Source: Pelomyxa schiedti (taxonomy: Eukaryota > Protista > Evosea). Taken from it: 64,000 bases of DNA. A program made the translations under genes and the position numbers. The notes below the pieces were generated by a model, which ran no database searches, was not told the DNA's origin, and saw only the letters and a list, made by a program, of their open reading frames with translations. The stretch lies in assembly GCA_020536535.1 (NCBI GenBank), contig JAHLWZ010000861.1, positions 1 to 64,000 of the forward strand, read 5' to 3'. Positions 18,380 through 24,782 of this stretch are shown one piece after another. The first letter of the stretch is position 1, and each line of letters opens with the position of its first letter.

Positions 18380-20628
<2,249 letters not shown>

Positions 20629-21040
20629 TGCAGGTTTCTTCGTGGCGGGCGCAGACGCAACACCGCAGGCCCCCGTCGTTGCTGTCGATGTTTTAGGTGT
20701 TGTCGTCATTCCGGTGTCGTGTCGCTCCTTCGTAGTGCGTACTGATCGAGATTTTCCTGAATGTACGAAAATCTCGATCAGGAAGATTGGCCCAAATGAC
20801 AAGGAGTGCCTCAGGAAGGAACCCACAATGCTGAGAAACTCCAAGCCCCGAGGGGTTCTCACTGAGTGGGTGTGGGTGGTTTCAGAGTGACGATGAAACT
20901 TAAGTTTTTGATTTCATCAGGTTGGTTGTTTCGGTGTACAGCACTTGCCGGACCAAATTTCATTCGGCACTCACCCGAAGGATCTTGTGAGAAATACAAA
21001 CAAAAAAAAAAACCAAACATCGAATCGTGGGGGCAGCAAA

Positions 21041-23364
21041 ATGTCGGTGCTGCGGCCAGGCCAACAAGGTAGTACCGCAAACGGTGTCAGTACCACGGTC
21101 CAGTCGCACGTACCGCCAAGATCTACGCTGCCGCCTGTGCCCCCGCCATCGGCCGCCGCGATCGCAATTCCGCCGCCGCCTTTAGATCCCGTTGTAATGA
21201 GAGGAACACCCACCAGCGGAATTGTGGGAGGCGGCGGCGAGTTGACGCGAGTCGCGTCGCAGCCGGAATTTCCACTCGGGCAAGTGCGGAGCAGCACGAC
21301 CGACAGCATCAATGACATGCCCGATAAAGGCAAGCTGGTGAGGTCGCGTAGCGTGAGCACCAGCGTGCGCATACCAAAGCCGGACCAGCCGAACCAAGGC
21401 AGAGGCCCGCCGTTGCCAAACATACCTTCCTCGCTGCTGAGGAAAACGGGGCTGAGCTTTCTATCGCACGGGCACACGCAACTGCCTGCCGAGCCCGCGA
21501 CTCCTCGGCCAATCGCGGTTTCTATGCAATCATCACCTCCTTCGCCTGGGAGCGAGAAACATTTTGCATTTCCGTGGAAGAAACACCGCAACGCGCTTCC
21601 TTCTTCAACTCCCTTGATGTCGGCTGGATCCGATGGGAGTGGCAGCGAGCTTGTGGGAGACAGTGCGGACGATAGCTCGTCATCAGATAGTGATGACAGC
21701 GAGAGTACTGGTCTTACAGAAGACCCCGGTGATGGTACTCCTGACGTAGATGGAACAAAGAAAAAGAAAATACACAAAGCCTCCAGCATGTTTTCTTTGA
21801 TGGCGCATCTGAAGCACAACAGTGGCAGTTCCAGTTCACCTGTACTTGCCGTAAGAAAGGACTCCGATTGTGACTCCCTCACCCCTGTGGTTCCATCTCC
21901 AACAACAACACACCCACGCCATTTAAAGCCATCCACCCCACTTCCACCAACACCAAAGCGTTCAAATTCCCCCGTTCCTGAAAATGGCACCCAACCTGAT
22001 CAACCTGCATCTGAAAACTGTGCGTAATGCGACTCGTTGTTTGTGTTTTTGTAATCTAATACTCAACAGTTCACCACCACCACAAAAAAGCGAGTGACAG
22101 CTTTAGAACCTTAAGGGGAACCCACAACATGCCCCTACCACCACTTCCTCCACAGCGTTCATCTTCTCCACCCCCACTCCCATCAGCCCGACATGCTCCT
22201 CCGGAGCATCCTCTTCCAACACCACCATCTAACAAGGAAACTGCCGCACAACACTCGCATGTTCCGCCAGCACAACCCCCACCTCCACCACCGAAATCGA
22301 AAAATCAATCCATAGATCAAGACCAATCATCCACCGACGAATCTTCTCCTATGACACCACCAACTACTCCACCTCTGGACGAAGCTTCAACATCTCCAAC
22401 TCCCAAACATAAACCAGGCCTCCTTCGCCGATTAAGTCACAGTTCTCTCAAGAAAGGCAAAAAAAAGCAAGGAAACAAGCCGGTATTTCTCCCTTACTGC
22501 ACTTTCTGTCAGAAAATAAAGTTCATAGGCCGCGGATTCCCTCGACGCACTGGAGAATAGCAACATCGTTGTGGACATCTTTCACAAAGCGATTGTCGAA
22601 GTAACCTACCTATTGGAGACAGACCAAATTCCTAAATGGCAAAACCGGCAACGTGTAAATAAAAACCTAGGTTACTAGCTTCCAAGTGCTCATTGCATTC
22701 AACTGGTTTAGATGTACCCACCAGTATAACGCTACAAGCAATATTTGAAAATCCCCCATGGCTACTCTCTTTCAAGGAGTTTGTGGACAACGAATTTGCT
22801 GCAGAGAGTATGCTCACCCTCCCAAACTTTATGTATCAACTTTTTGTTGCAGACTTGAGCTTTGTTCGTGAGGTTAACACTCTACAACTTTCTGTCAAGA
22901 AACTAGATGAAGTATGACTTGCTGTAGTTACTTCTTATCTAATTATATTTAGTTTCAAATAGATCACGAGCTAAAGCGGATATGCAAAAAATATATCAAC
23001 GAAGAATCTCAGATGGTTCCTTCTCCACAAACTTCCGCTCTTCTGACACACCGAAAACATGCAGGAAGTTAACATTTCCTCTGATGTTCGCATGGATATC
23101 AAGCAAACTATCTATGGCACTAGCGAACCCTCCACGCCAGATAGTGGGACACCCGACATTCCACCTCCGGCACTCCCCACAACCACCGCAATATCGTCAA
23201 CGGCATCCTCCACAGCCACAGCCTCACTGATTGACATACCGCCCCCTACACTCACCCTCCAAATCCCGCCACCAGACATCACAGATGCCGAATTCATCGA
23301 AATTTGCTCCGCCGACATTCCACCGCCTCCACTCCCAGCCTCATCAAGTGGCTCACTACTATGA
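21041..23364 (+). CDS. Pro/Ser-rich protein with an RGS domain (segments apparently in permuted order)
   Basis: Spliced: IFHKAIVEVTYLLETDQIPKW...TLQAIFENPPWLLSFKEFVDNEFAAENLSFVREVN...LKRICKKYINEESQMEVNISSDVRMDI. Confidence 0.75.
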
Positions 23365-23817
23365 ACACACCCCACCAGTCACACATCACGCAGCCGCACC
23401 TTCATGCACCTTCGTCTTCATCCACGTATGTTTATTTAGTGTCTGTACAAAACTGTTTCTCTAACTTATGCCCCTAATGAAAACAATTTTTGGAAGTTCC
23501 ATTGGAACGGCACATAAGTAAGAGTCATCAGAACAACACTCAGCGAGGACTAAAGTGGTCTAAAAACAGACCTCAGTGTACCTGTTGTCGCAAAAAACCG
23601 AAAAGTGTGTCAGTTTGAGGTCTATGTGGACCAAACAATGTTGGTGCATAGGGACGTGACACTGGAATCACTAACCGGAGCACTTCTCTTGCTGTAGACT
23701 TGCCCTTGAGAAAAAAAGAAGGAAGATATGTTTCTTTTAGTGGTGGTTCTCGATAGTCCTACAATACAACAGACAGTTAAGAGAAGAGGCCTGAAAACTG
23801 CAAATCTTTCCCACCGG

Positions 23818-24489
23818 TCAGTTCTTGTTGTGATACAGAATCCTGCAAGCCTCTGTGAGGGGAACATCCTCCAAAGCAGGAACGGGATCATCGACATTGG
23901 AGGGATCAACTACGGCGAGGGTGCTTGCGGAATTTGGCGAGTGTGACTCATTGCGGTGCTCATCTTTATGTGGGATGTATCAGGGGGATGTGAGGATGTA
24001 GGAAGAAGAAACCGGTGTAAGTTCTCCACGAGTGCATGGGTTCCACGTGGCTGAGAACAATGCCGTGGTAATATATAAGAATGAAGAAAAAGGAAACACA
24101 GAGCCAGCTAGGTACAGCTAAGGCCCAGTACCTGTTGATAGTACTTCAGAAAAATAAAAACAAGAAACAAACAGTGTGCATACTTATCCGGAAGCAGTTG
24201 CTTAGCAATTGACTCCAAATGCAGGGCTCTCCAGGCCGCATCAGGCACATAAGCAAGCACCAGGTAGCAAACTAAATGATGGGTTCGGGCGTAAGTTAAT
24301 TCCACAACAACACACTAAAACGAGGAGCCCCCGCCCCCCAGTGTTTGTACTGATATTCATTTGGATTCACAAGGTCAAAACAAACACACCGAGTGCAACC
24401 GACGTTGTTATCCACGCCACGAACCCATAAGTCTCAATGTACACTCCCCCTGCTGTCTTGGCCTTGCCCACGGTGATACTACCGTCCAT
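23818..24489 (-). CDS. PIGP: GPI-GlcNAc transferase subunit PIG-P (Gpi19)
   Basis: ETYGFVAWI, YLVLAYVPD, LLPDKYWALAVP, TYTD and VPALEDVPL motifs. Confidence 0.85.
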
Positions 24490-24782
24490 CTACTGCCCTT
24501 TCTTCTACGAACCGCTGTTACTCCCACCCCCGTTGCGGAACAAAAGCCACACGTGGCAGAATAAAAAAAACACCAGACCGCCGATCCTGAGCTACGATAA
24601 CAGAAATGACAGCGTCTGTTGATAATTTTCCGCAAGGTTGTTTGTTGCGAAACAGTCTGTGTCTGCTCAGAGATTACAGCTACGGTGTCGAGTTGGGCCA
24701 ACGAACGCCACACCACTCATTTGGGGTGTCATTGTTTTCCTGGCCCAGATTGAAGCATTATCACTCACGACGAATCGATTAC

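Follow-up and report, generated by a model that had tools for sequence, protein, structure and literature searches.

Can an RGS domain be encoded with its last helices first? The question is raised by a gene on the plus strand (21041–23364) of a 64-kb window of Pelomyxa schiedti DNA, the window being the whole stretch analysed, to which all coordinates refer. According to the original prediction, made from the sequence, this gene encodes a circularly permuted RGS domain, and our analysis supports that reading. Both pieces of the domain are homologous to RGS domains, they stand in swapped order, the order is conserved, the gene is transcribed and spliced, and AlphaFold2 predicts a single domain with confidence. 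We put the probability that the permuted reading is correct at about 72%.

To our knowledge, the RGS box has been described as a fixed unit of nine helices, whether in animals, fungi, plants or protists. In RGS4, α4–α7 reportedly form a four-helix bundle and α1–α3 with α8–α9 a terminal subdomain, the two chain ends lying side by side; the Gα contacts are said to be in the α3–α4, α5–α6 and α7–α8 loops, with E87/N88, N128 and D163 as contact residues. On this RGS4 numbering, the segment encoded first in the Pelomyxa gene (segment A) corresponds to α7–α8, and the exons that follow it (B–E) to α2–α6.

The C-terminal RGS segment is encoded first

The gene has seven exons on the plus strand, separated by short GT..AG introns of 41–50 nt, and its product has 683 residues. 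The spliced model equals the NCBI protein KAH3745703.1 (here P0001; Pelo_12885, annotated 'hypothetical protein') at every residue. Its parts, and the intron at the join of segment A to the remaining domain, are as follows.

21041..22019, plus strand: exon 1, with the start codon; a disordered N-terminal region rich in Ser and Pro, in which short basic R-x-x-S motifs are conserved, placed by the open frame and the match to P0001.
22070..22482, plus strand: exon 2, Pro-rich and disordered, ending in GLLRRLSHSSLKKGKKKQGNKP; covered by RNA contigs at 22209–22349 and 22341–22481.
22529..22670, plus strand: exon A, the RGS α7–α8 segment, with the core motif IFHKAIVEVTYLLETDQIPKW at 22577–22639.
22671..22711, plus strand: intron between exons A and B, 41 nt, GTTACT..TTTAG, phase 1, at a position common to all four paralogues.
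22712..22807, plus strand: exon B, the end of the linker, then α2 and α3 to FAAE; the Pfam RGS match starts here.
22853..22911, plus strand: exon C, the N of the E-N pair (α3–α4 loop), then α4.
22953..23015, plus strand: exon D, α5 (..HELKRICKKYINEESQM), matching positions 3–19 of the canonical profile described below.
23065..23364, plus strand: exon E, the EVNIS loop (conserved Asn) and α6 at 23065–23121, then a Pro-rich tail and the stop codon TGA at 23362–23364.

Exon A translates as ..LDALENSNIVVDIFHKAIVEVTYLLETDQIPKWQNRQRVNKNL, which agrees at each position with the C-terminal RGS motif F-x-x-A-x-x-x-[IV]-x-x-L-[LM]-E-x-D-x-[FI]-P-[KR]-[FW]. After the linker come exons B–E, which read D-VPTSITLQAIFENPPWLLSFKEFVDNEFAAE / NLSFVREVNTLQLSVKKLDE / FQIDHELKRICKKYINEESQM / EVNISSDVRMDIKQTIYG, with the landmarks ..LQAIFENPPWLLSFKEFVDNEFAAE-NLSFVREV.., then ..KRICKKYI.. 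and then EVNISSDVRMDIKQTIY. Thus the claim that an RGS C-terminal segment is encoded first was borne out, both by the motif and by the profile comparison below. The sequence after the linker had been described as helices 1–6; we find α2–α6 there, the homologous part beginning at about α2 with no clear α1. A linker does lie between the two pieces as predicted, but its extent had to be redrawn: exon A has its donor at 22670/22671, which makes the linker QNRQRVNKNLDVPTSIT, of about 15 residues. A 32-nt intron at 22655–22686 and a donor at 22653 were considered and dropped, as the donor at 22671 matches the RNA depth and the NCBI protein.

The α2–α6 part is recognised by ordinary searches. The Pfam RGS model (PF00615) matches P0001 residues 519–600 with model positions 2–80 of 117 (E = 2.5e-10; 41.2 bits against a cut-off of 23.9) and finds nothing in P0001 before or after that stretch. 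Seven other family members have an equally truncated match, making eight with P0001. Searched exon by exon, Pfam returned nothing even at E = 10, since the exons are too short, and a six-frame search of the whole genome with the RGS model gave no match on the contig of this gene at E ≤ 0.001. A profile of exon B from the four paralogues matched only RGS5 and RGS14 in the PDB. With the profile of the family domain (alignment A5), 35 RGS chains were found at E ≤ 0.01, with RGS3 at the top (3.8e-12).

In RGS3, RGS2 and RGS5, that last search aligned in two pieces. Profile positions 58–141 fall on chain residues 9–96, and profile positions 13–42, which are segment A, fall on chain residues ~90–136, in swapped order and on the target motif ..F-D-L-A-Q-K-R-I-F-G-L-M-E-K-D-S-Y-P-R-F-L. 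These second pieces score ~5 bits each and so prove nothing alone. We also built a hidden Markov model (HMM) from the C-terminal halves of six Pelomyxa RGS domains of canonical order; the local HMMER database included the domains of paralogues C173 and C800, joined from their exons. All nine family members matched this canonical model in two pieces with the order swapped, and the frame of exon A was the window's best match to its α7–α9 part (E = 0.0027, against 3.1 for the next, unrelated frame). A model of α7–α9 only (32 columns) was too weak alone, its best family match having E = 0.053.

Profile–profile comparison is the decisive test of homology, and by it the match of exon A to α7–α8 is beyond chance. 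Segment A from nine members aligned with the canonical Pelomyxa C-terminal halves over 28 columns in hhalign (probability 91.5%, P = 8.6e-7, score 33.6); the range for exon A against canonical α7–α9 was 91.5–94.6%, with P from 8.6e-7 to 7.3e-8. After 300 column shuffles the mean score was 8.8 (sd 1.9, maximum 18.0), none of the 300 reaching 33.6 (z ~13), and the reversed profile scored 9.1. Windows slid over the remaining family domain reached an hhalign probability of at most 2% against α7–α9. The helix order was the same, α7–α8 ahead of α2–α6, in 10/10 family sequences covering both parts, none of them having the canonical order. The protein therefore has two RGS-homologous parts in swapped order, as a permutant should, and no complete RGS copy.

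Transcription and completeness of the gene

Could the swapped order come from missing or misjoined exons? RNA contigs were mapped on 18600–24500, using two single-cell runs that belong to the same study. Two of these contigs span 23115–23465 without a joint, through the stop codon, so the stop at 23362–23364 is not spliced out and no downstream exon is added. A 504-nt contig begins at 22341–22481 and is then spliced; its depth per bin matches exons A (donor 22670), B, C and D, and at 22911 a loose contig end has the letters TTTCAAAT, with which exon D begins. Both flanks (18600–20724 and 23757–24390+) hold spliced minus-strand genes with many CT..AC joints. In the six-frame scan of the window there were no open frames resembling either RGS half besides exons A–E.

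These results bear directly on the original prediction, which had named a downstream exon with helices 7–9 or an upstream exon with helices 1–6 as the findings that would overturn it; neither of these occurs. Downstream there is unspliced RNA (23115–23465) and then a minus-strand neighbour; upstream there is a spliced minus-strand neighbour, with no such frame in the window, and HMM, hhalign and Pfam tests gave no trace of α1–α6 ahead of exon A. It was likewise correct that only a Pro-rich tail, here of 80 residues, and the stop codon TGA at 23362–23364 follow helix 6. A tail motif, DAEFIEICSADIPP, was tried as a displaced α7 and rejected: its spacing is wrong, and HMM and hhalign match nothing beyond α6.

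A faulty gene model or assembly, with exons missing or misjoined, thus has almost no probability left. It would be compatible with the lack of an RNA contig over 20767–21357 and ~23018–23114, and with the five joints within the gene that were not read directly from the RNA joints listed but inferred from RNA depth and the identical NCBI model. However, that NCBI model is independent, the depth of the 504-nt contig and the loose end at 22911 agree with ours, four paralogues have the same exon order, and homologues without introns encode that order in one continuous frame. Missing exons are ruled out by the RNA contigs, the oppositely oriented spliced neighbours and the intron-free homologues.

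Some further observations concern the transcript and its surroundings. Exons B and C are separated by a 45-nt intron (22808–22852) that keeps the reading frame and contains no stop codon (open frame 22693–22917); if retained, it would add 15 residues at the FAAE|N junction, in the α3–α4 contact loop. Relative to the window, the RNA contigs show T>A at 22633 and C>T at 22755; both changes are synonymous, at third positions of Pro codons, and look like variation between alleles or strains. The neighbouring genes have introns of 40–57 nt, and one joint, at 24271–24390, spans 118 nt. The terminal 137 bases of a 1.6-kb contig (G000:C2395:1464-1600) are 99% identical to window positions 23265–23400, the contig probably being an allelic or duplicate assembly fragment.

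The permuted order is conserved

The original prediction had proposed looking for the same order in related genomes; three paralogues in Pelomyxa keep it, as do genes without introns in other eukaryotes. The paralogues, on contigs C1576 (P0002, KAH3723307.1), C173 and C800, share the order, the intron positions and the Pro-rich tail. Between P0001 and P0002, identity is 81% in segment A, 63% in α2–α6, 53% in the linker and 31–32% in the flanks (31% over P0001 residues 1–464), making segment A the best conserved part of the protein. When 1.84 billion representative proteins were searched with a profile of exons A and B, the matches were limited to P0001, P0002, two metagenome clusters and two spurious matches (P0003 and P0006, bacterial repeat proteins brought in by the large profile search and rejected as members). 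A word search from one of the clusters added four proteins.

Altogether, six proteins of uncultured eukaryotes share the swapped order, with ..F-E-x-A-R-K-[ED]-T-F-Y-L-L-x-V-[DN]-F-[FY]-P-x-W ahead of α2–α6 and just 18–23% identity to P0001 across the domain. The genes for P0014 and P0013 are on two genomic contigs (9.5 and 6.5 kb) that share their neighbouring genes, one of which encodes a ubiquitin hydrolase, and each of the two is one uninterrupted open frame, so splicing cannot account for the swapped order there. The linker has 10–17 residues in the Pelomyxa proteins and 30–35 in the P0013/P0014 clade. Judged by these sequences, the permuted RGS is a family and not an accident.

P0001 retains each of the three Gα contact motifs: the E-N pair follows α3, E-V-N-I-S contains the Asn, and E-T-D-Q-I-P-K contains the Asp. 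In 7/7 sequences A-E-N-L is invariant, as is the Asn within the E-x-N loop (E-[VLIQ]-N-[IT]-S), and the residue just before the [IF]-P-x-W turn is Asp in most members and Asn in two. In human RGS proteins, the aligned counterparts of these motifs are S-E-E-N, E-V-N-L-D and K-D-S-Y-P-R.

This conservation speaks to one alternative, in which the gene is a decayed tandem RGS: segment A would be the remnant of an upstream copy and α2–α6 a downstream copy without its end, the product serving as a scaffold without GTPase-activating protein (GAP) activity. Tandem RGS-RGS genes are indeed present in the genome, and Pfam sees only a truncated domain. A remnant, however, would not be expected to be the best conserved part of the protein, or to stay beside α2–α6 across clades at only 18–23% identity; moreover, the three contact motifs are retained, AlphaFold2 confidence in α2–α4 depends on segment A (below), and there is no trace of α1–α6 upstream or of α7–α9 downstream. 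We consider such decay unlikely.

The disordered regions around the permuted domain also have recurring features. Exon 1 matches no Pfam family. Basic R-x-x-S motifs occur in both clades, before the domain in Pelomyxa (RSRSVSTSV and GLLRRLSHSSL at P0001 residues 100–110 and 440–452) and after it in the metagenome clade (HRTRSASMGL and GLFRSISHFSL in P0004, P0011 and P0013). The tail at 23140–23350 repeats acidic-IPPPxL units (DIPPPALP, DIPPPTL, QIPPPDI, DIPPPPLP), of which the C173 paralogue has about eight; they look like proline ligands of the EVH1, profilin or SH3 type.

The domain is predicted as a single fold

AlphaFold2 modelled P0001 residues 463–612 from a seven-row family alignment with a mean predicted local distance difference test score (pLDDT) of 78.6 and a predicted template modelling score (pTM) of 0.71. 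Helices lie at model residues 3–46, 57–62, 64–76, 80–95, 101–115 and 128–139, and pLDDT is 88–94 over residues 21–90, from segment A through α4. When segment A was left out (residues 512–612), pLDDT fell to 69.4 and pTM to 0.49, no residue reached 90, and α2–α4 stood at 64–76. The prediction thus treats segment A as part of the domain. From the sequence and this prediction we infer that the segment would take the α7/α8 position in three dimensions.

Foldseek and VIA-align both rank RGS domains first, and the 25 best VIA-align rows are all RGS (Z 6.3–8.2), pairing model residues ~47–140 with only the first ~85–95 residues of the chains. RGS16 residues 57–145 superpose on model residues 50–140 with a root-mean-square deviation (rmsd) of 2.6 Å over 88 residues, and RGS4 residues 60–143 on 54–140 with 2.6 Å over 84. 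Some up-down bundle proteins align across model residues 2–140 in VIA-align, a hint that segment A runs beside the remaining helices. A fold search of the ESM Atlas returned only ordinary RGS clusters, with ~90 aligned residues, and no permuted cluster of at least 50 members.

Several of our results weigh against a permuted RGS domain. The alignment behind the model has only seven sequences, Foldseek E-values are just 0.1–1, and Z-scores of 7–8 are middling for helical models. The sequence-ordered fold searches leave segment A, and α7–α9 of the targets, unaligned, as aligners of that type must do with a permutant. DSSP shows model residues 3–46 as a single long helix, not a kinked α7/α8 pair. 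Pfam sees nothing in segment A; profiles of segment A alone found no RGS chain in the PDB (with four sequences one unrelated match, CdnE, at E = 0.25; with nine sequences none) and, in the genome, just the four paralogues and no canonical RGS exon.

The failures of the segment A profiles are what one would expect if a truncated RGS domain had been joined to an unrelated helix that resembles α7–α8 by convergence or chance. Such a helix is hard to reconcile with the hhalign score and its shuffled and reversed controls, with secondary HMMER alignments that land exactly on the α7–α8 motif in RGS3, RGS2 and RGS5, or with a canonical HMM that puts its α7–α9 part on segment A in 9/9 members. Chance resemblance is accordingly very improbable in our judgement.

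The undivided helix has another possible meaning: segment A could complete α2–α6 of a second molecule, giving a domain-swapped dimer or chain. A helix drawn with ~44 residues and the short Pelomyxa linker would suit a swap in trans. Against it, the linker of the P0013/P0014 clade is long enough for fold-back, and the monomer is predicted confidently (pTM 0.71). The chain ends of RGS4, reportedly side by side, also count against it, since with that geometry a short linker suffices. We regard the swap as improbable, though somewhat less so than chance resemblance.

Proposed function and origin

In the permuted reading, α7–α8, with the third Gα contact loop, is encoded first and followed by a short linker and α2–α6, the domain ending after α6. 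The N-terminal helix would pack back into the four-helix bundle (with α4–α6) and against α2–α3, giving a native-like RGS fold. The cut point would be the α6–α7 loop, which by the up-down topology of the bundle lies opposite the Gα-binding face, and the old ends would be joined by 10–35 residues.

The Pelomyxa schiedti genome holds several Gα genes, among them one at G000:C776:16155-17261, and together with the kept contact motifs this leads us to expect GAP activity towards Gα. The protein is most likely a GAP for an amoeba Gα subunit; provided that it folds correctly, we give activity roughly even odds. The disordered flanks, with their R-x-x-S motifs and Pro-rich tail, are probably regulatory or targeting elements.

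As to origin, a tandem RGS-RGS gene may have lost the beginning of its first RGS copy and the end of its second, which would give the swapped order. Pelomyxa has such genes on contigs C791, C874, C313 and C842, and a tandem gene is the textbook intermediate for permutation by duplication. An origin by tandem duplication is a likely hypothesis. In the Pelomyxa tandem genes examined, the second copy lacks the E-N motif, so these genes are not the direct source. On C791 and C874, a long Glu/Lys/Arg-rich repeat lies in an open frame directly upstream of the tandem gene. Identical RGS matches at near-equal coordinates (G000:C842:24994-25233 and G000:C862:24978-25217) are likely to reflect duplicate contigs or haplotigs of one tandem-RGS gene.

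A bolder account, which we consider fairly unlikely as a whole, would make this an old and separate permuted-RGS family of Pelomyxa and uncultured, probably related eukaryotes. It would be tandem-derived and active as a GAP, with chain ends opposite the Gα face that let phospho-regulated arms and the Pro-rich tail steer the domain without blocking it; or else segment A would swap between molecules, oligomerisation switching the GAP on.

Comparison with known RGS systems

In the literature searchable, which included few subscription journals, circular permutation together with RGS domains returned only permuted fluorescent or LOV proteins, and no paper combined Pelomyxa schiedti and RGS. We thus found no published description there of a natural permuted RGS. 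The order kept in relatives suggests that this signalling fold tolerates rewiring. If the protein is a natural permutant under selection, the RGS fold tolerates a cut in the α6–α7 loop and joined ends, which would be useful to protein engineering, for example in split or sensor RGS designs. It would also be a clean example of how duplication and the loss of ends can produce a permutant, in a genome where tandem RGS genes persist. Because domain scanners call a permuted RGS truncated, rearranged regulators may be under-counted in surveys of protist G-protein signalling.

The best sequence and fold matches of the Pelomyxa family are R4-type RGS proteins (human RGS3, RGS5, RGS2, RGS8, RGS1, RGS16 and RGS4; PF00615). 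The two are alike in α2–α6 (rmsd 2.6 Å over 84–88 residues for RGS4 and RGS16) and in retaining the E-N pair, the EVN Asn and the Asp at the α7–α8 turn. They differ in order, with α7–α8, linker and α2–α6 in Pelomyxa instead of α1 to α9, and the Pelomyxa domain, without a clear α1 or α9, is flanked on both sides by long disordered regions.

EhRGS-RhoGEF of Entamoeba histolytica (PDB 4GOU), a fellow RGS protein of the Archamoebae, is a good structural match (Z 7.0, 97 residues). It has its helices in the canonical order and carries fused DH-PH domains, whereas the permuted family has no other Pfam domain. G-protein-coupled receptor kinases contain an RGS-homology domain, an RGS-like bundle built from parts that are separated in the sequence, and it matches the Pelomyxa model weakly (Z ~5). 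Unlike the Pelomyxa domain, it is interrupted by a kinase domain and keeps its helix order, and hence is not permuted.

Tandem RGS proteins, namely those of the four Pelomyxa contigs above and animal D-AKAP2/AKAP10, differ from the permuted family in that both copies are complete, and the E-N motif absent from the second Pelomyxa copy is present in the permuted family. In these proteins, however, the α7–α9 end of the first copy stands directly before α1–α6 of the second, and this junction is the one kept in the permuted family.

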